From Magallana gigas (Eukaryota): 64,000 nt of DNA. The stretch covers positions 9,734,001 through 9,798,000 of the forward strand of contig NC_088857.1 in assembly GCF_963853765.1 (NCBI RefSeq), in the 5' to 3' direction. The position numbers and the translations under genes are program-made. This document shows positions 18,910 through 55,684 of the stretch, piece after piece. The notes beneath the pieces were generated by a model that did no database searches, was not told where the DNA came from, and saw nothing but the letters and a program-made list of their open reading frames with translations. The first letter of the stretch is position 1. Each line of letters begins with the position of its first letter.

Positions 18910-20100
18910 ATGTTAAAGTATTCGGTTACAAGTGATGAAGGCTCGTTCTCTCCAAACCCTGCTTACCACGAACACACAGAAACTCATTTAATGAAGGACA
19001 CAATTGACGTCAACATCAATCCAAGGTCGCGTGCAAAAATGGTGATGAAGAAACGTGCAAAGCAGGTTCAGAGAAGAGGAGGAGACTTTTCATTTTTCCC
19101 GCCAATTTCTAGGACTCCCAACAATCAGCGTAAGGAGGTCATTACACCGTATGTTAACCATATAGACGCAGAATCGCCGTATATTAATTCATTGGGAATA
19201 TCACGTGTTCATGACGTCACGACACCGTATGTTTTACATAGCCAATATTCAAAACACGACGTCTCGTCACCCATGCCCCAGAAGGAGCATACGAGGGTCT
19301 CAAATCTCTCTCGTAATAACGCAGGAACCCCCCAGAATCAACCCCAGCATAATGTAGTGGAAATTACTAGAATTAGAAAAGACCAATCGTTTTCTCACGA
19401 AAGTATTAACAAAATTGGTGCTTCCTCTCCATTCATAGAAAGACGGTCTCGGTTAGATCATCGTCGAAAGTTAACGAAAGAGAATGCAAATCAACATACG
19501 TCTCGAAACCACGTGCATGATACAGACAAAAACGCAAAGTTGCAGGTTCAGAGTAATCAAATGGGACTAGTGCAAAGGACCGAGCGCCACAAGTCTTTCC
19601 ACGACTACAGCCGAGCCAGAAACGAGGAACAGTTCTCTATCCGGAAGAAAATAGAGCAGTTCCGGAAATGGCACGAGGAACAGTATAAAGACAAGCTGAA
19701 GAGATTGAAAGAAGAGGTAGACAATCAGTACGAAGTCGAGAACATAAAGGCTCAAACTTCCAGGGTCGGTAGTCACACACCGCAAGGCAATGTATCGGTG
19801 GAAAAGAGAGAACGGCCAGAAAAGAAAAGAAAACCCGAACCACAAAAATCGTCTTCCAGTGAACAAACCCCGGTTCTGAATGGAGAGAATTTACCAAGCT
19901 CTGTGGACGAAAAAGCGAGTTCCGAACGGACTTGGCACACGTGGCGTGACGTCAACGATTCCTACGCGTACTCTGACGTGAAGCAGTACATAGAGGAAAA
20001 CGAACTGATGACGAAAGAGAAGGAGGAGTGGATAAAGAAATGGGTCATCGATGTTGACAAAGCGATGAAACAAGAGACAGACGGTACCTCTCAAGTGTGA
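18910..20100 (+). CDS. Uncharacterised 396-aa protein in a single coding exon; hydrophilic and probably disordered, with a coiled coil and a W-rich helical C-terminus
   Basis: 1191-nt open frame in AT-rich DNA with higher GC. Upstream splice signals: CAG|18680-18730|GTAAGT and GCAG|18831. No recognised domain; the true start may be ATG 18991. Confidence 0.75.
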   Translation: MLKYSVTSDEGSFSPNPAYHEHTETHLMKDTIDVNINPRSRAKMVMKKRAKQVQRRGGDFSFFPPISRTPNNQRKEVITPYVNHIDAESPYINSLGISRVHDVTTPYVLHSQYSKHDVSSPMPQKEHTRVSNLSRNNAGTPQNQPQHNVVEITRIRKDQSFSHESINKIGASSPFIERRSRLDHRRKLTKENANQHTSRNHVHDTDKNAKLQVQSNQMGLVQRTERHKSFHDYSRARNEEQFSIRKKIEQFRKWHEEQYKDKLKRLKEEVDNQYEVENIKAQTSRVGSHTPQGNVSVEKRERPEKKRKPEPQKSSSSEQTPVLNGENLPSSVDEKASSERTWHTWRDVNDSYAYSDVKQYIEENELMTKEKEEWIKKWVIDVDKAMKQETDGTSQV

Positions 20101-21322
20101 TCCACATATAAGCTTACTGTGATAAAAACTTATTGTGATATATTCATGTATTCAGTTTGATTGATCTCTGTAGAGATTCCGTCATCAGTCCAAAACTACA
20201 GTATTATCTCAGATATTTTGGAAAGTGGTGCAAAAGGACACCCGGATTCCTGTATTTTTCTTCCTTACCTAAAAGTTTTGCCCACAACGAAAATATATGA
20301 GGAGATTGTAAAATATAACCGTTTACTTGAATAAGCAATGTACAATGTAAGCAAAGAAAGCGATATGTAATTTATTAGTAAATACATATTTAATGAAATG
20401 TTGATGCACATTCTTACCTCGCGCTGAATTTCTTAATATAAATATGAACTAATTATATGAAAACTTTATTTTATTGAGTTTGTTTTAAAAAAAATATATT
20501 GTTAAATAAATTATTGTTTGCACAAGGCGTTTGTAATAATTGAATTTGACATAACGATTGAAGAACATGTACACGTTTTTTTGCTTCTAATTTTGCATCT
20601 TTAACTCAACAATGGAGGATTTAACCAGTGCACAACACGAGCCAATATCAACAAAGAAGTTTTCTTAAGTTTGCAAATCATTTTGTATATGACTTTTTGT
20701 ATAAATGCATGCATGTATACGTGTTTAGCGACCAAGTACAAAGATTTTGGATGCAAGGGCGAATATTGCATTTTTAAGGGGTTGGAAAGTACTTTGCAAA
20801 AGCAGATTTCGTGTTATTTAAGTCGAAATTAAACGTACCAGCGAATATTTTTTGAAATCACACCTAGTATACATGAAGTTATAAATCATTTGTTTGAGTG
20901 TTCAAAGGACGAATATACAGTATCCTCCTGACATCGACAACACTTTTCATCAATTTTTCATATAAAATTGTGTATACCGTGTTTGTGATAATGTAATCCC
21001 TTCGTCTGTGAAACTCGAGGAATCCACTAATCATAACTATTCACCAAATATGAAGATTCCTCAATCAAACCATATACATAGAAAGCGTGAATAAAGAGGT
21101 TTTTTCAAGGAGACTTTTTAAAATAACTTGTATCCCTTTACCGCATTTTACGATATCCTTTGTTTTATTCATTAATGGAATACACATGTATATGCAAACG
21201 CTTGCAGAGGTTCTCGGTTCAAATGATCAAATGAATAAAGCACAGACTTTAGATGATGTATTTGTTTGATGTGCTCTTTGTAAATGAATAATATGCAGAC
21301 GAGGTACACCCTCCGGAAATTT

Positions 21323-24300
21323 TTATATGTTAATGACATAATAACTATCGGGATTCTGTCGCAGAGTGGAGCCGCCCCTGTGAAGCGTGAAGATCTCTGG
21401 ACCATGTCCGCATAGCTGTGCCGCAATCTAATAAACAGATAAACAACAGTTAGCGATATACACACCTTAGAAATAATCAAAAGTCAAAGAAAATGTATAA
21501 AACTAATATATTTATTGCTTTCTGTTACTGGTAATGGAGTTAAACTATAGTGGAATATAGATAAGGCTGGGTTCGATTGACCTATTCTAGATTAACGTAC
21601 GTAGCATCTTACATTTAATTATTACAATCTATCTTAAGTTATTAATGCAATGCATTTTCTTTGATTATTAAATATATATATAAATATCACAGGATTCGTA
21701 CGATGTTCATTCAACAGTATAAAAAATTTTTATTTCTCTTTTGAAACACCCACTCTAGCTTGTCAGATTTCAATACACAGCTTAAAAGAAAATGTTTACG
21801 GGGATTTTGCATTGTAACATAAATAAAACTAAAAGTACCCGGATGGGACGAGATCGATGAAAAATTGTGCGAGGTATTCCAAATGACATCAAAATCTAAC
21901 ATTTCCCATTATAAATATCCATAAGAAATCTGTTTTTGTAACTACAAATATTTGAGTGAAAAACGAAAATGTGTAGCTGAAGATATTCTGGATATTTTTC
22001 CTATTCATCAATTTCAATTGCACTTCTTTTACAGGTACATGTATGTGCATTTTATATGATAATTAAAAATCGTCCAAATGCATAAACATTTTTGGACAGA
22101 CTTTATGGGTACACAAAACAAAAAGAGACCTGTTAATGGCAATGTAACCATGGACCAACTTGCTGATATTTTGTTGATTATAGGACCTCGTTTTGCAAGC
22201 CTAACCTCTGAATAAAGGTTAAATAGTTTACAGTGCCTAGATTAACGAATCTGTGAGTGTGGTTCTTACAAGTATTTGATTTAACAAGTCTTCATACGTT
22301 GTTCACTGTTCATTTCAAAGTTCATTCATTGTAAATAGTTCGCAGTGAATGTCTCTGTTTGGGAAGTCCCAATAAGAATATACAACACTGACCTTGAACC
22401 CGTCATCCGTGCACTCCACGAAGATTCCCGACAGGGAGGAAGAGTCCAGATTGTACTGACCAAACTCAAACGTGGCGATCGGTGTGTACGCAGGAATCCT
22501 GGCGCAGTTTTCCAACACCTAAAAATTAAAAGGAAGTGTGTCAAGTTATTAGTCCTCGCTTTTCCTGACAGGCCTCAGTATCATCACGTTCGGTCAGTAA
22601 GCACCATTGCACAGTGCAGACTTCAGTATGATCCAGACCTACATTTTTGTCAACCCCCATCCCCCCTTCCAACAAATACAGGATGTACATGTAAACGCCT
22701 GGATTATGTCGACTAGTAAATTCAAAAGTACACTCAAACGGAAGTTCTCGTCTGTTTACCTTGGGTCCGGCGGTCCATGCCGAGGGTGCCGGAGCCTTAC
22801 AGGTCTGCATGACGACCGCCTCGGGTGCACTGTGGGTCCCGTCCGTGCAAAGTCCGGCATTGTCGTTAAGAACTTGGTTTCCATTTGCAAGAACCATCAC
22901 AAAGGCCAGAGGATCACATGTCTCTATAAGAAGAAACATATAAGATTAACTACCTTATCAAATATACTAAATGCATGGTAATTAAACAGAAGTATGCTAG
23001 TATGCTAATTTGTTGTTTTTATTTCATCACGCTGGTATCGATATGAAATAAAATAATTTGGTTATACACATGTATGCACGATCTACAAAATATTATTTGG
23101 ACGTTGTCCATTCCGTTTTCTCAAATCAATGCCCAAAAAATTGATACTACAAATTTATTTTACCAGAACAGCACAAAACCAATATTTTAACAATATAACA
23201 ACGATTATGGAACTAGTATATTAAATATCTTATAGTTTGGTAATATTGTAGTATGGTTTATCAAAAGTACTGATATTTACTGAGATTCAGAGGAGGCAAT
23301 GTGCTTCCTGGCATATTAGTGGTTGCTGGTGGCATGGTTGTGGTGGCGGGTGGCATGGTGGTAGTGGCAGGTGGCATAGTGGTGGTAACTGGTTTCTTTG
23401 TGGTGATCGGCTGTGTGGTTACCTGGACGGTCGTCGTCGGTTTCTCTGTTGGTTTCTCCGTAGGTTTGTGCGTTGTTGTCACGTGAGAATGTTGTTGGAT
23501 ATGAAGAAGACCTACAGTACAAATCACCTGATTATAAAATTGATTGGTTCGTTGAGCTGTGAGATATAGCAGCTCATGTTGCTTTGTGACATTACATACC
23601 TTCACAAAACGTTTGTAACTTATTAAGACAGCCAGGTTCAGTGTTGTGTGTAATAAGGTCTCGAAGCCTATTCTCTAAAAATAACAAAAAAAATTCTTAT
23701 ATTCCAAAAGGAAGAAAGAAGAAGAATATTATATCGAACATGCTAATACTCTATAACTGCAAAAATTATGAAACATTCGGACAAGTCACCAGTGTTTCCA
23801 TAAACATTTTAAACTTATGAAATCCGCTCTTATTCCAAATAAGTTCCAAGGAGTTATTCCGGATATTGACGTCCGAAATGCTCCAGTATAATTATGTATT
23901 TGCAAATTTTCCGGATCGGAATATCCCAAAGTGCATCGAACACTAGAGACCTGTATGTCACTCTATATGTGATATGTATGGGACCGGAGTACCTTGTGCA
24001 CAGTGTTTTTAAATAGAGACCAATAAACCTAAATATGTGCATGTACAAAGAAATACCTCACAATATGCACAAATGATAGACGGCGCGTCTTTTAACCATA
24101 ATGAATCACAATGATACCACAATGAACTGATGATATTAATTGAATACATTCATTATATATTTGGTATAACTACCTATACGTGTTTTATACACAATTTACA
24201 GGTAACTGCAATGTTTGACATTGTGGTTAAAAGACGCGCCCATGATACAGACCGGAATGTACATGTAATCCAATGAATACCGGTATATCTGTAAACAAAA

Positions 24301-47300: not shown

Positions 47301-50300
47301 TGATATTAGTTTCTGTAATAGAGAATTATATCACATGAAATTGTATAATATGATACTGTTATATTATATAATATCGTATCATACGATATTGTATAATATG
47401 ATATTGGTTTATAATATGATATTTATCACATCACATGAAATTGTATTGTATGATATTGTAAAATATATTATTGTATCATATGATACCATATGTATAATAA
47501 AATATTGTATTATATAATATTTTACTTTATCACATAAAATTGTATCATTTGATATGTTACAATGTTGTATCAAATTATGTTGTATCATATGATACAATAT
47601 CATATTATGTATCATAAATGATACGGTATTATAAAATATCATACTTTATTATGCAATATAATATCATATGTTTCAATGTTATGATGTATTATGTAATATG
47701 ATATTGTAATATAATACTATATTATATTGTTTTATATATTATGATATTGTATTATTTGATCAAATACAATAACGTATAACACAATACAATGTCATATCAT
47801 ACGTTACAATATCATATCTCATCATTGTTTATTATGGTATTTTATTGTATTATATGATATATGTTGTAAATATGATAGGATGCAATATTTAATTTAAGTT
47901 TATATTATTGTATTGATTAACATATAAACATATGATTATCATTCAATTTTTTAACAGATGATATACGATATTGTGTCAAAACAGAATCCATGAATATCCA
48001 GAATCATAAAGTATGATTTTCATTTAATATGATAAAGATGGTCTCATAAAGGTGAAATCTCATAAGGGTGATGTCTCGTCTCGGTGAGCTTTGTAATCTG
48101 TGATTACCTATGTTTCTGTATAATGGTGATCTATAAGAATCTCATTATATCAATTTATATTTAAAAATTAATAAGTTTCCAATACAAAAAATAATACACT
48201 CCAAATTTTTTTAAAGGATCATCCAAGCCATCATTAGTCTTAAAGAAGGCAGCTAAGAGAAATTGTTCCTTGTGCTCAGCAGTCTGTGAAGAGCAAGATA
48301 TGAGAGACTGCAAACCAGAGGATGCCAAGTACGTACTGGGCATTGACGTTCCACAGAATAGTAGGATATGCGGAGACTGTTCAGACAGTATACAAAAGTA
48401 CCAGGATTTCAAGAAAATGGTCATAAGAAAACAAAACAGCTCAAAGATTAACTCGGATGAAAAAGCAGTTTCTACAACCCTAGAGAAGGTAACACCAGGA
48501 AATAAAAATGTGATTCAAAAACCTACGAGTGAAGTACATGTAGTTAAGGAATGTAAAAATGACAGTGAGAGTCAGTATTCAGATGAATATTGCAGCATTG
48601 ATTCAGATATGTCTGGAGAAATGGAACATCATGAGGAGTTAAAAGAAGCAGAGAAATGTGACAAAAAGAAACAAACCACAATTTCTGCAAAATCGGAAAT
48701 CAAGCAAAGTAGACCTGTCACGAGATCAAGTTTGAGAGAAACCAAAAAACAAAATGAATCAAAACAGATTGTTGCCAAGAAACGTAAAGAAGTATCCCCA
48801 GTTAGTGAGGTTACAAGGCCCATCAGGAAAAAAACGCCCTTAATTTTGTCTAAGGAGAATGAAGCAGAAACCAAAATGCCCATAGGAAATGAAAACCAAA
48901 ATTTGACCCAGAGGGTATCAAAATATTGCACACCTGCTAAAACCAATGTTGAACCTATGAAATCAAATACCAGCAGAAAGACAAGATCCAGCACGGGGAC
49001 TCCTGAAAACTCAAAGACAGTTAGTATCCCAGAAAAGCAGAAAGCACCAAGCTCTTCAGGGTTGAGTATTGAAAAACGAAAATCTTCTCCCAGACTGATA
49101 GCGCCAAAACCCATTGGAACAAATTCTTTATCAAGTTTGGCAGCAGCAGCAGCTTCTATTGAAGAAGCAGGTTCAGTAGATGAAAAGGTATCAGTAAAGA
49201 AAACACAATTGTCAAATGCATCAGAAAAGCTGAAAATTACCTGTACCGCATCTGGTTCATTGAAAGATACTACCGTTAGTACTTCATCCAGTGTAAACCT
49301 GATTTTGGTTGGGGGACCTGATCAATTTCAGCTTGTTCAGCCATTGACAGAAAAAGGACCATTAGCTCTTGATGAGATGGTAGTTTTATCCAACCACTTG
49401 CAGTCACAGTCTGAGGGAATCATTAATCCACCCGCAGCTACTCATCAAACTGGAAAAATTTCGATTCCATCATGTGAGTCAAACCTGTTCAGCATTTCTT
49501 CCATAGTTCCTAGTTTGCTGGACAAGTCCAAGAGCTCATCGACAGTGCTGACAACTGCATCAACTAGTGTTGTTTCCACTCCAGAAAGACCATCAGCCAT
49601 GAATTCTGTTGAACAAAACACTGCTGATAATACATGTAGTTATACATCTTCAGGAATGGTTAAAATTTTACAACCTCAGACAAATTCAGACTACAAATTA
49701 CCAACCAAGCAGTCTTGTAAACCTGGGGAACGTCCTTTAGCTCCAAAGATAAATGCTTCGAAAGATTCAGAAGAGAGAATTGCTGGCACATTGAACAGTG
49801 CAAAAGCGGCACAAGCAGTTCCAATTTCAACACCTCTTCAAACTGTAGTAATCGTTGGTGCACCAAACTTGATGACACCTGCACTCAATACAAATAATGC
49901 TGGTTTAATGCTTTCATCCTCACAAGTTCTTACACAAACAATATCTACATCGCGATCGTTATTTGGGAACACTGTTGCCATATCTACATCATCAAATTCT
50001 GGAACAAAACCAGCCAATCCTATGCCTGCATCATCAAATTCAGGAACAAAACCAGCCAATCTAATGCCTGCATTATCAAATTCTAGAACAAAACTAGCCA
50101 ATCCTATGCCTGCATCATCAAATTCTGGAACAAACTCAGCCGATCCTATGTCTGCATCATCAAATTCTGGAACAAACTCAGCCAATCCTTTGCCTGCTTT
50201 ATTGAATTCATTAACAATACCAGCCAATCACACGCCTGTATTATTGAATTCAGGAGCACAAGCAGCAATGCGCCGTTTCCTTCTGCATCCTGAAAAGAAA

Positions 50301-51691
50301 GAAAGCAAGAAGAATACAGATGTAGTGAACAGAAGTGACAAGGAAGAGACAAACAAAACCAATTTGTCAACAGGAACTAAAAGTACACTCACAGTTTCTA
50401 CAGCTTCAACACAAAAAGAAAACAAATCTCTCGATAAAAAAACGACCTTGTTTAAAATAGGCGATGTGTATTATCAGTTAGTTGTGAAAGATGGCAAGCA
50501 ATTCTTGGTACCAAATGGACAACAACTGCTTATTGGTCAACCAGATGTGCCTGCTTCAGAGCAGAAGAAAAAAATTGCAGAGTTAGGAACAGGAAAGAAT
50601 ATTTCAAACTCATATAAAAGAAAGCTGATTGGAGAGGCAAGTTTTACTTATTTTGTAAACATTAATGACACAACAAAAAAAAAACCTTTTTGTGCAAAGA
50701 CATCATTTGAAACGCTACATTTTTGCAAGTATTGGGTCCTTTTGCCGAAATTTGAGCAAAATTAGAAATCCAATAGAATTTTGCCTATCCAAAATTGCAT
50801 ATTTTTTTGCCTATTTGTATACTTCTTTTTCATCATGCTATCTTTCTCTAGATCTGATCATGATCAAATAATTTTCTGCTGATTTGAGAAACTATTTCAA
50901 GGTGTAGTGAGCCACCTTAATGTACAAATGTTAATGTAATGGAGGACCTGAGTTCATGAAAAAAAAACCATAGCATTTATTTATCATCTTTTTCTGCAAT
51001 GTTGGATTGTGTAAAGTGTAAAATGTATGTTTTTATTAAAGCAGGAATACCATATAGTTAACCCGTTGGCTAAAGCATACCAAAACAAAAGACCCAAAAC
51101 ATCACATGCAAAGGAAGAAAAGAAAGGTAATATTCCTCTTGCAATTTCATTTTTAGCCTAATGGTTGGAGGTGAATTTTAGTGTGATTTTAATATCTAAT
51201 TTGTCTATTGTTACTTATTTAAACATTACAGGAATTACATGTAACAACTTCTCTGAAACAATTTTACTTGTTTTAATCAAAACTAAGGTACAATATCTGC
51301 AGAAAATGGATAGTATTACTGTCATTGAAAATGTTCTACATAAACAACACAATTCATATAATTATTCATATTAAATGATGAGTGAGAAAAATCCATCAAA
51401 ATTTGTAAAATTTCCATCCTTTAGTCATTTTTCAGTCTTACAGCAAGACATATTTCATGATATCATACAAGGTTGTGATACTAAGGATCTTTTCAGCTCT
51501 ACCCCTTAAAACCATAAAATATATAATATCTTTTCTATGTTTTAATTCTAGCAATTAATGTTTTGAAAAATCATTTTTTTTTCTTCAGAATCAACTCAAG
51601 ATTTAACTCCAGAATCTGAAAGTGACCCAGAAGAAGTAACCACTGAGGAAGAGCAAGAGAGACTGGTAATTTATGAACACACACACATGCA

Positions 51692-51732
<41 letters not shown>

Positions 51733-54700
51733 TCTTTTCTGTGGATACATTATATGATTAACTTTAGAAGACTTTAACTATTTAAAAGAACCCTTAATTA
51801 GGATATATGCCCTCATTTATTCTATTTTCTACTCTCAGAATAAAAACACACCCAAAGACCAGCTACCTGGAAAACAGGGCCATCCTATATCAGATAAATC
51901 TCAGACTTCAGCGGTTGATCATGAATATACTGGGAGGCGAGAAGTAAATGGCCCTGTGAATTGCCTTAAATGTGATTTCTTTGCAACATACTGGAGAACT
52001 ATGGCAGATCATATGAGGAAGCACAACATGAAGAGATACTGCATCAAGTGCAACAGCTTCATGACCACCAGAAAATTTCCATCTCACTGTTGTAAGCGAA
52101 AGTCATTAAGGAAAGCAAGAAGACAAACATGTTTAGTCTGTTCTAAGCTGGCAAGTAATGCTGTTATGTTGTTCAAACATTACAGAATAAATCACAAATC
52201 AGAGATTGAGAAACATGGCCACTGTAATGCTCTATACAGAAGTGTAAGATCCCAAAGCATCTTTGTTTGCAAAGGATGTTTAAATGTTGAATATTCTGAG
52301 CTCAACATGTTAAGCCATGTGAAGAAAGTTCATATCTGTGTACCCAGTGAAAGAACAAACTCCTTCAGTCATCTGCTTCACAAAAATGAACCAGTCTGTG
52401 CTTGCCCGGTGTGCTGGCTTCACTTTCCTGAGAGAAAACACCTTGATTACCACTTGAATGTCTTCCATGTCGACAAAGATAACCATAATTGTCATCTGTG
52501 TAATGAAAAATTTAACAGTAAAGAGGACTTAGTCAATCACTACTCTACCCACCAGCCCAACATTAAGTACAGCTGTGGAATCTGCAAAGAGTTCATAGAG
52601 CCCATGAGTTGTCTACAGGAAGTTATAAATCACAGAAATGCCCTCCATCCAACCAACAGCCTTCATGCTCTGCTGTTATGCCCAGTGTCTGGTTGTAACA
52701 AGAGCTTTGATGAAGATACAGAATTTCTGCAGCACATGACCCATCATGAAATAGGACAAAAGTACAAACACAAATGCTCGAAATGCGAGTTTAGCGCCTC
52801 CTCTGAGAATATCTCTGCCAGGCATGCTGCAAAATTCCATTATGAACCAGAAAGGCGATGTAACATATGCACAAAGCGGTTTAAAACACCATCAGAACTT
52901 GATACTCATCTGGAAAAGCATGATGAAGAGATGTATATATGTGAGTATTGTGGAAAAATCAACTCCAACAGTTCACTGCACAGCCAGCATATGAAGAAGC
53001 ACAGGGAACGGATGAAACCGAACACGCTTTTCTGTGAAGTGTGTGGTGAAGGATTCAGGGCAGAGCCGTACTTAGCCAAGCACATGTTTGTCTATCATCC
53101 AGAAGTCAAACACAGCATAGTGCCAACACATTTCCCGTGTATCTATTGTGATCACAACAGTTTGTCTTCAGTGGCCTTTCGGCAGCATATGTCCTCTCAC
53201 AGGAAGATAAACCCGTACCTTTGCAGTTTTTGTGATAGACGCTTCTGTGATAAGAACCTGTTGAAAAAACATTTAATTAAACATAAGCAAGGAATAAGTA
53301 AGAAGTTTAGGTAAGTTTGTGTTAGTTTTATCATATGTAACTGTTGTTTATTGTCATTATCCAGACTGTAATACCCTGACTCCAGTATATCTTATGATTA
53401 ATGTGTATTTTTCATGAGTGCATAATTATAATCATCTAGATAATTAACGACATGATATAAGTATACAGTAGTACATGACTGTATTAAATGATAAGAGTGA
53501 GATAATCTTCACTGCTTGCCATCAGGGCTTTCATTAGGGGTGGAATGAGTATAGATTCATGCCCATTTCTATGATCAAATTTTACCACTCTAATATCATA
53601 ATAAGATAAATACACAATTCGAAAAAAAATGAAAAACTAGCCTCTTCTTATTGATAAATTCATCTCTCCATTTCCAAGTTATTGAAAGCCCACATTGCTA
53701 TTTTTGAGTACTATAAATTTCTTATTCCTTGTGTATACTTAATTCCACTGTTTTATATCAAATTGCAAGTCAGAATATAAAATTGCACCAATTTTTGGTT
53801 ACCTGGTATAATTTCTATAGTTTAAAACTGTCTGAAAAATAAAAATGAGATTTTAAAAATATGTTAGGGTTGCTTCTCACAATTTTGCATTGATTTTAAA
53901 TTTCCTCGCATTTAATTTGGAATCTACAGTATCGTCAGTCTAATTTATGTAATATACAAGTCTTGATCTGTGGTATAAAAAAAAATGTTTGTTTAGTAGT
54001 GGTTCCTTGATATCTCTCATTATACAGTATCTGTAAGTTATGGTAGGGATTATAAATATAAAGCCTTTCTTATTTTGACAGGTGCTTTGTATGCCATATT
54101 GATAGAGAGGCCCATGACATGAGGACTCACTTGCAAGGAGAACCCCACAAAAACAACTGTCAATTAGCTGGCATCGATGTTCAAAATTACAATCAGGACC
54201 TTTTAAATGCAATGCCTTCCAAATCAGAGATGCTGGAACGACCAAGAAATTCAGATGATGAAAAAAGTTACGTAGACCGGTGCGTGAAGATCCACGAGGA
54301 CCATTGTCAGAAAGCAGCACGAGTGATAGCAGAAAGAGAGACTTACTCAGTGATGATGTCGGACGGACAGGAGCTACAGATCGACATGCAGTCTAATAAC
54401 GCCCAGTGCCAAGAGTGTGGTTTGGTGTTCAAGACCGATGCAGATCTAGAAGAGCACAGACGTTTTGTCAAACGTATAGGTTTCAAAGCACTTAGAAACA
54501 ATTTCACCTGCCAGGTTTGTGACATCTATCTCTTTGGTAAGATAACTGTTGTGGAGCATGCTGGAACTGAGAGGCACATCGAGCTTTGCCAGAGGAAGGG
54601 AATCGACCCTGGTGATGTTCTGGACAAGAATAAGATTCCCAACAAGTTGCGCATAGCTAAAAGAAAACAAATTTCAAGGGATGGGTATAGATGCAAGATT

Positions 54701-55684
54701 TGTGATATCTATTTAAAAAGTAAAGAGAGTAAGGATTCACACATTGAAAAAGCATTCCATGTCGATAAGTGTCAAGAGCTTGGGGTGGATCCTGCTGGGG
54801 ACCACTTTGAAGATTACAATGATGAAAAGAAGTTGAAGAAAAAGGTTAAAACATGGCAACAGGAGCGGGTGAAGAAACCTAAAGAGATGAAAAGGGACAA
54901 AGTAATCACAACAAGGAAGAAGAGACGAGTCATGATTGAACTCCAAGGTGTGAAAGTTCCTAAAATGGTTGCATTTGGCTGTCTGGTGTGCGGTGTGGAT
55001 TTGAGTGACAGGACTCAAACCATAGATCATCTGAACACTTCAAAACACATCATAAACTGTGTATGTAGAGGAATTCATTCGGGTCCTGCTAATCTTAAAA
55101 TCATAATTGATGATTATCATTCAGTGATTGGGAAATCCATAGCAGAACTTCTAGGAATCCCCTCTACTTCCACGTTCCCGCTATCAGAGACAGACAAAAC
55201 GCTTTATCAGAAACAGATACAAGAGGCAGAATCTGCAAAAACACGGAAAAAGAGGATTTCAGTAGAAGCAACAAAAACCCTTGAGAACACCATCGACCTC
55301 CTAGAGAAGAAGCTGTTCAGCCCTGGCACTTTGAAAACAGTATCGCCACAGAAACCATCACGAAGCTATACACAGGGACAGCCAATCTCCAGTGGTGATA
55401 TATCGACCTCAAACAATTCACAAAATGACGTTTATCAATCGAATTCGGTTTCCTTTAATGTTGCTATTCCTGTGTACCAAGGTACATTCGTGCCACCGTC
55501 ACCAAGTAGCAAAAAGAGGACGGCAGTTCGCAACGTACCTATGCAGAGTGTGATCGACGAGGGACAAGTGATAGCGGAGGACCAGATTCTCTATGATGAC
55601 GTCACAGAGGTGCCCGATATCTCCCAGAACACGGCTTTAGCAGCCTTTGGCACAGAAGCAGCAAATTTAGACTCGTTCAAGTAG
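44353..55684 (+). CDS. Large multi-zinc-finger protein (~1977 aa): ZAD-like C4 motif, long low-complexity region, ~13-14 C2H2 fingers, four matrin/JAZ-type fingers. Exons 44353-44484, 44871-45018, 48217-50636, 51045-51126, 51589-51665, 51839-53310, 54082-55684
   Basis: All junction phases are compatible (0,1,0,1,0,2) and the total of 5934 nt is open. Intron 50637-51044 begins GCAAGT. The start codon is uncertain (44353 or 44419, or an upstream exon). Confidence 0.85.
45797..48114 (+). mobile_element. ~2.3-kb Helentron/DINE-1-like non-autonomous element with tandem ~166-177-bp core repeats, in intron 2 of the ZF gene
   Basis: 15-bp subterminal IR AGCTCACCGAGACGA (45801-45815) / TCGTCTCGGTGAGCT (48076-48090); (GGCGTC)n microsatellite at ~45844-45879; core unit periods of 166 and 177 bp. 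Confidence 0.85.
47000..47940. repeat. AT-rich degenerate low-complexity tract (ATATTGTAT/ATATGATAC-like units) inside the Helentron-like element
   Basis: About 940 bp of cryptic short-period repeats. Confidence 0.85.
49989..50255 (+). repeat. Coding 42-bp (14-aa) tandem repeat, ~6.3 copies (SSNSGTKPANPMPA)
   Basis: TCATCAAATTCTGGAACAAAACCAGCCAATCCTATGCCTGCA units at a 42-nt period within ZF gene exon 3. Confidence 0.9.
51677..51735. repeat. Compound (CA)n(CT)n microsatellite, intronic
   Basis: Direct reading. Confidence 0.95.

Follow-up and report, generated by a model that had tools for sequence, protein, structure and literature searches.

The oyster Magallana gigas carries, on the minus strand of a 64,000-nucleotide stretch of its genome (contig NC_088857.1, positions 9,734,001 to 9,798,000, below called the window and numbered from its first letter), a gene for a protein of 326 amino acids (aa) with a signal-peptide-like N-terminus, a Thr/Pro-rich stalk and a C-terminal domain homologous to the bacterial amidase effector Tae2 and its tick relative Dae2. 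Alignments place Pro, Leu and Ala where the enzymes have Cys, His and Asp. On balance, the gene product is probably a secreted, mucin-stalked protein in which a horizontally derived pseudo-amidase with the Tae2 fold has been reused as an extracellular binding module, with peptidoglycan as the probable ligand. The reuse of bacterial weapons by animal immunity has a textbook case in the domesticated Tae amidases.

Homology, fold and active site of the C-terminal domain

The domain comprises residues 196-326 and is encoded by the last three of eleven coding exons; the preliminary description of this DNA had recognised it correctly and numbered it about 141-271. The NCBIfam model NF033857 describes the BPSL0067 family, which is the family named Tae2 in PDB and UniProt. 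It matches a 122-aa spliced form of the oyster domain with an E value of 4.1e-6 and 27.1 bits, and the 131-aa domain with 26.8 bits, the curated cut-off being 27. This match depends on the spliced form, because exons 9, 10 and 11 compared one by one with Pfam and NCBIfam gave no match. Pfam holds no model for the Tae2/BPSL0067-like domain family, and the domain matches neither its NLPC_P60 nor its CHAP model. A phmmer search of PDB with the single sequence retrieved nothing relevant; a profile made from three oyster paralogues retrieved a chain of 6WIN and no other entry. When 1.84 billion cluster representatives were searched exhaustively with a profile, 230 of them proved to be relatives at E ≤ 0.001, and 78 full-length domains were drawn from this search. 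NF033857 is matched individually by 47 of these 78 at E ≤ 0.01 (best 4.8e-14), and the profile built from all of them has a single significant match among 177,635 PDB sequences, chain A of 6WIN, 'Type 6 secretion amidase effector 2' (E 1.9e-5). By language-model features, the closest ESM Atlas neighbours of the domain are 56 clusters named 'BPSL0067 family protein' (top score 0.97). P0106, a catalytically intact relative of the eukaryotic type, retrieves 'BPSL0067 family protein' genes of bacterial plasmids in a tblastn search, with E values down to 8e-9.

Structure prediction points in the same direction. The AlphaFold2 model computed from the 78-sequence alignment has a mean pLDDT (predicted local distance difference test score) of 96 and a pTM (predicted template modelling score) of 0.89. 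Foldseek finds only 6WIN below E 0.001 in PDB, and its two best matches among the models of reviewed UniProt (Swiss-Prot) entries are tick Dae2 (B7PLT0) and Tae2 of S. Typhi. The match to tick Dae2 covers residues 2-131 with an E value of 1e-5, a template modelling (TM) score of 0.73 and 25% identity; a fold search of the ESM Atlas returns bacterial BPSL0067 clusters with TM scores of 0.78-0.82. RipD, an NlpC/P60 protein that is non-catalytic and has been described as adapted to bind peptidoglycan, is also among the fold matches, at 7% identity. The model thus predicts that the domain keeps the papain-like amidase fold of Tae2 seen in PDB 6WIN. By profile, language-model features and fold alike, the domain is firmly homologous to tick Dae2 and the Tae2/BPSL0067 family, and the resemblance to Tae2/Dae2 motifs first noticed by eye is not due to chance, the structural comparison that the preliminary description had proposed leading to the same two proteins.

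The active site gives a different picture. The catalytic residues of Tae2 in 6WIN are Cys23 and His73, and Cys43 is essential in tick Dae2 (Hayes et al., bioRxiv 10.1101/2020.04.10.036376). Hidden Markov model alignments put Pro229 of the oyster protein (codon 22825-22823), which precedes the conserved Glu-Ala of a helix, at Tae2 Cys23, and alignment with the 78-sequence profile puts Leu279 (codon 22434-22432) at His73. The Asp of the enzymes' DQW motif, which is probably their third catalytic residue, is replaced by Ala295 (codon 21421-21419), the Gln being retained. The same three equivalences emerge from a direct alignment, gap-free near the active sites, with six prokaryotic BPSL0067 proteins and three eukaryotic relatives that carry the enzyme motifs (QC..., GHA..., DQW); the Cys, His and Asp columns are intact in all nine of these catalytic-type sequences. 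Among the 75 mollusc-type members the Cys column contains no Cys (Ser in 32, Pro in 10, and His, Asn and Asp in 8 each, with others) and the His column no His (Leu in 28, Gln in 13, Thr in 8, with others), while the Asp column is mostly hydrophobic. In the RNA reads, the only variants within the codons of Pro229 and Glu230 are synonymous.

The AlphaFold2 model has Pro229 immediately before the helix formed by domain residues 35-42 and Leu279 immediately before the strand formed by residues 85-91. The start of such a helix and the start of such a strand are the canonical sites of the papain-like nucleophile and base. A Glu or Asp directly follows the former nucleophile position in 73 of the 75 mollusc-type members, where the enzymes have Val or Ile. 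Outside the triad several residues shared with the enzymes are retained (W50, G53, V56, I63, T67, A70, F72, G95 and Q101 in domain numbering), as is the conserved core of the substrate-side face (W..G..V, I.xxT.IATF, G and Q).

Two of the motifs originally taken for enzyme motifs turn out to be something else. The Cys of the opening string QTCKAP is one of six framework cysteines and aligns 8 residues downstream of the Cys that is catalytic in the bacterial and annelid relatives. At the place of the enzymes' HAA(I/V)(F/Y), read at first as a HAAIF-like motif, the oyster protein has SGIF, and the catalytic His is therefore gone. Judged from the alignments, the domain would be unable to act as a cysteine amidase and appears to be a pseudo-enzyme: no such activity is expected, because Cys, His and Asp are replaced by Pro229, Leu279 and Ala295. 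Since the fold and the profiles place it in the family and all three catalytic positions are occupied by other residues, it is classed as a non-catalytic derivative and not as a Dae2 enzyme.

It is accordingly very improbable that the oyster protein is an active domesticated amidase, a true Dae2 that cuts bacterial peptidoglycan. The clear Tae2/Dae2 fold, the family membership by profile and the probable secretion of the protein would all suit such an enzyme, as would the intact Cys, His and Asp of an annelid and two unplaced eukaryotic sequences. The nucleophile, base and Asp positions themselves, held by Pro, Leu and Ala, speak against it, and no alternative Cys/His pair was found across the family. 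One candidate pair, in the motif CGHGP, was rejected: its His occurs in only 19 of the 78 members, and the Cys next to it is a framework cysteine that never varies and that the catalytic eukaryotic relatives have as well.

Gene structure, expression and protein architecture

The gene lies on a 57-Mb contig of the oyster genome. The full model has 11 coding exons running from an ATG at 28725 to a stop codon at 21323, with GT-AG borders throughout. Its parts are as follows.

28692 to 28725, minus strand: coding exon 1, the ATG (28725-28723) and most of the putative signal peptide (MAVRFFVLTLT...); from the gene model, with a GT donor; the alignment of transcript L017 begins at 28724.
26230 to 26259, minus strand: coding exon 2, end of the putative signal peptide; transcripts, read joint 26117|26230 and gene model.
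26067 to 26117, minus strand: coding exon 3, N-terminal helical part; transcripts, reads and gene model.
25837 to 25884, minus strand: coding exon 4, N-terminal helical part; transcripts, reads and gene model.
25520 to 25570, minus strand: coding exon 5, N-terminal part; transcripts, reads and gene model.
24780 to 24845, minus strand: coding exon 6, N-terminal part with the conserved motif YSSxFDEAF..HN..PD; transcripts, reads and gene model.
23600 to 23674, minus strand: coding exon 7, end of the N-terminal part; transcripts, reads and gene model.
23281 to 23511, minus strand: coding exon 8, Thr/Pro-rich mucin-like stalk with three TTTMPPA repeats; transcripts, reads and gene model.
22760 to 22923, minus strand: coding exon 9, domain residues 196-250 (first third); transcripts, reads, alignments and gene model.
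22393 to 22518, minus strand: coding exon 10, domain residues 251-292 (middle) with the motif IPAYTPIATF; transcripts, reads, alignments and gene model.
21323 to 21427, minus strand: coding exon 11, domain residues 293-326 and the stop codon (21325-21323); transcripts, reads, alignments and gene model.
20928 to 21322, minus strand: 3′ untranslated region, of at least this extent; the alignment of transcript L015 reaches 20928 and RNA contigs span 20900-21427.

The donor of exon 8 is in phase 1 and gives Lys196 its first base; both introns within the Tae2/Dae2-like domain are in phase 0. The last three exons splice as the preliminary description had claimed, with the quoted peptides and AG/GT borders, and a protein of 122 aa called on transcript contigs from public runs (P0009) is identical to their spliced product. 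P0009 was retrieved by a word-indexed protein search with the read-through open frame of exon 9; searched with the 122-aa form, and within its length window, the same index gave only the gene itself. Logan contigs from four runs (L014-L017) align exon by exon and contain the junctions 23281|22923, 22760|22518 and 22393|21427. The same joints appear in stranded poly-A raw reads from two further runs, each supported by 3-21 reads that all have the orientation of minus-strand RNA, and read depth is restricted to the exons. The oyster gene is thus an expressed, spliced animal gene of 11 exons. Bacterial contamination, against which the two introns had been cited from the start, is excluded because the domain sits in a spliced and expressed animal gene with a putative signal peptide.

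Two details of the RNA data concern the margins and introns of the gene. The first 56 nucleotides of L017 diverge from the window (28724-28780) right at the start codon, with TTG GCT in place of ATG GCT and an unrelated 5′ sequence; this end stems from a chimeric path of the assembly or is an alternative 5′ exon whose use would remove the start codon and the putative signal peptide. Within the last intron, positions 21750-22040 have sparse RNA coverage from both strands, many loose read ends and several differing bases; this looks like reads from other copies of a dispersed repeat, outside the transcript of this gene.

The N-terminus of the protein (MAVRFFVLTLTALSIDA) resembles a signal peptide by eye, at residues 1-17. 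Residues 18-128, about 110 aa from coding exons 3-7 (23600-26117), form an N-terminal part conserved between oysters and Mytilus, with the invariant motif YSS.FDEAF..HN..PD and two Cys. This part has no match in Pfam or in the ESM Atlas and is modelled, at low confidence (pLDDT 65), as four helices; it is an orphan domain in its own right. The Thr/Pro-rich stalk follows at residues 129-195 (about 65 aa), and its three TTTMPPA repeats belong to a region that is probably O-glycosylated. The C-terminal domain of 131 aa has six cysteines that are invariant or nearly so across the family. Its identity to the orthologues of C. virginica, O. edulis and M. edulis is 82, 77 and 53%, respectively, compared with 56, 59 and 32% for the N-terminal part, which makes the Tae2/Dae2-like domain the best-conserved portion of the protein.

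The mollusc family and its origin

All named non-catalytic members of the family are from molluscs, namely bivalves and abalone. They come from oysters (Crassostrea virginica, Ostrea edulis, Saccostrea), mussels (Mytilus), clams (Ruditapes, Mya, Mactra, Mercenaria), scallops (Argopecten, Ylistrum), unionids (Potamilus, Sinanodonta) and abalone (Haliotis). Clustered at 50% identity, the mollusc branch comprises at least 230 clusters; source names were retrieved for 17 of its members, and these are throughout uncharacterised or carry misleading automatic names. Other members couple the domain to EGF repeats, ShK domains or an Ig V-set domain. P0018 (552 aa) and P0026 (498 aa) each have profile matches in three separate stretches and may hold several copies of the domain.

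In the oyster genome at least two full paralogues share the same two intron positions, and there are several further matches at the level of single exons. These occur in pairs 10-70 kb apart: 38640233-38640746 (minus strand) and 38650841-38650954 (plus strand) on contig C3, 31855392 and 31921472 on C2, and 53371972 and 53406365 on C5. Their third exons were not found with the oyster query; the pairing points to local duplication within the family. A search of the oyster genome with P0106 retrieved only non-catalytic paralogues and detected no active copy, and a six-frame scan of the whole genome with NF033857 gave one weak, unrelated-looking match on contig 7 (E 0.35, with one stop).

Three eukaryotic relatives have an intact triad: one from the annelid Paralvinella palmiformis (P0114) and two that are unplaced, one taken from a metagenome and the other from a run assembly. 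The metagenomic P0106 has a Cys-rich module at residues 20-100, ahead of the amidase domain, which is SH3b-like by eye and has no match in Pfam. Trees of the family, the phylogenetic check envisaged at the outset, were rooted by imposing the root on six prokaryotic sequences. Within this scope the eukaryotic sequences form one group, with a support of 97 in a quick tree and 100/98 in a careful tree from which the active-site columns had been removed. The catalytic members P0106 and P0146 branch at the base of this group; the annelid P0114 has a placement with poor support. All non-catalytic sequences fall into a single clade in the quick tree (support 96), and the best tree without the active-site columns needs two changes. 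A single non-catalytic clade is not rejected by the approximately unbiased test (p 0.48), and catalysis was possibly lost only once, which is compatible with the trees. The catalytic eukaryotic relatives share most of the mollusc cysteine framework, which argues for a common eukaryotic ancestor.

A bacterial origin of the domain is the most economical reading, because the family is broad in bacteria and patchy in animals. Of the domesticated, horizontally derived amidase fold proposed in the preliminary description, the fold and the homology stand, this origin is the preferred reading, and the part that falls is an intact amidase. There is very little room for the converse history, in which an old NlpC/P60-like fold of animals gave rise to the domain or was passed from animals to bacteria. 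Such a history could draw on the small number of prokaryotic sequences in the tree and its imposed root, and on the other NlpC/P60-like folds that eukaryotes own, such as the C-terminal domain of AIM3/BBC1, a weak match here. By far the nearest relatives in sequence and fold, however, are BPSL0067/Tae2 proteins of Pseudomonadota. An Enterobacter plasmid carries its BPSL0067 gene directly upstream of a gene for an 'STY0301 family protein', which we guess to be the immunity gene. The named eukaryotic members, moreover, are molluscs and one annelid, and the literature found otherwise describes ticks and mites only.

As a separate observation, plasmid pMETHO01 of Methanomethylovorans hollandica (L032, 143278-143931) encodes an annotated BPSL0067 protein with intact Cys, His and Asp and a signal-like N-terminal segment. 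A family known as a bacterial type VI effector would not be expected on an archaeal plasmid.

Elsewhere in the window, a single open frame of 396 aa, rich in Lys, Glu and Ser and with no Pfam match, lies just downstream of the gene on the opposite strand (18910-20100, plus strand). Three long open frames of 831, 452 and 521 aa occupy 48270-55684 on the plus strand; the second and third have C2H2-type zinc fingers and the first has no match in Pfam. They are possibly one zinc-finger gene with very long exons.

A dead amidase fold as a proposed binding module

In the history that we favour, a papain-like peptidoglycan amidase of the bacterial Tae2/BPSL0067 family would have become the C-terminal domain of an animal protein with its fold kept. 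The Cys-His-Asp triad is missing across the mollusc family, which has six framework cysteines and a newly fixed Glu/Asp after the former nucleophile. The dead fold has probably been maintained under constraint as an extracellular recognition module, which would most likely bind the stem peptides of peptidoglycan on bacteria while displayed on the mucin-like stalk. Bacteria could in this way be presented to, or trapped in, a mucin-like secreted layer. Its attachment to EGF, ShK or Ig V-set domains in other members is how an extracellular binding module behaves. Peptidoglycan is proposed as the ligand because RipD, although non-catalytic, is described as adapted to peptidoglycan binding. Non-catalytic peptidoglycan recognition proteins are a second example of binding without cutting.

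Several points weigh against this interpretation. The ligand is one that we infer, and remodelling may have fitted the groove to a different one. Change rather than mere decay is indicated by the Glu/Asp that has become fixed after the former nucleophile and by the hydrophobic residues found in place of His and Asp. The NCBIfam score of the oyster protein alone is right at the cut-off, and the residue equivalences are based on sequence alignments and secondary-structure position.

A serious alternative is a pseudo-amidase with a role unrelated to bacteria, for example a component of mucus, adhesive or shell matrix or a binder of a host ligand, with its groove re-tooled; we regard this as the less likely course. 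It would fit the mucin-like stalk, the automatic names 'integumentary mucin C.1-like' and 'spore coat protein SP65-like' given to some members, the conserved pattern that replaces the active site (E/D in 73 of 75) and the large lineage-specific expansion with EGF and ShK partners. The retention of residues shared with the enzymes outside the triad, and the peptidoglycan binding of RipD, the sole documented precedent for a dead fold among the matches, tell against it, neither of them decisively.

Comparison with known systems helps to place the protein. Dae2 of Ixodes scapularis (B7PLT0) is likewise an animal protein derived from Tae2, is secreted, as is predicted for the oyster protein, and is the best structural match in Swiss-Prot. 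It is, however, an active enzyme that requires Cys43 for peptidoglycan cleavage and killing, where the oyster protein has Pro, Leu and Ala at the triad, and it is a small single-domain protein of 142 aa, to which the oyster protein adds an N-terminal part and a mucin stalk. Tae2 of Salmonella Typhi (6WIN) is bacterial, intronless, delivered by type VI secretion and catalytic (Cys23/His73), whereas the oyster domain lacks the catalytic triad, is split by two introns and has six framework cysteines. RipD of M. tuberculosis (Rv1566c) shares the non-catalytic state of an NlpC/P60 domain but is only a distant fold relative, bacterial and of another subfamily. A parallel for a dead transferred tae gene is the second Dae4 homologue of Nematostella vectensis, an animal copy without the catalytic cysteine (PMC8713801). 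It differs in belonging to the Tae4 family and in being a single paralogue, in contrast to a Tae2 domain in a family expanded across a phylum. A literature search combining Tae2/Dae2 with bivalve terms found no link, although lophotrochozoan homologues may have been mentioned earlier (Chou et al. 2015); in the literature found, dae2 is an active enzyme of ticks and mites only.

A wider scenario can be put forward tentatively and is, in our estimate, somewhat less likely to hold than to fail. A type VI amidase gene may have entered an early lophotrochozoan and stayed active in at least an annelid, while the molluscs lost the triad, possibly once, and radiated it into hundreds of secreted proteins that carry the dead fold on mucin, EGF, ShK or Ig scaffolds. 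The domain would then represent a new class of cell-wall pattern-recognition domain.

The molluscs thus hold a second animal branch derived from Tae2, much larger than that of ticks and mites, in which the domain is a predicted pseudo-enzyme and yet the most conserved part of the protein. A sizeable set of orphan mollusc proteins thereby gains a name. If the domain binds peptidoglycan, it would be a new recognition module for the immunity of bivalves, among them farmed species plagued by Vibrio disease, and would clearly illustrate how a transferred enzyme becomes a receptor.

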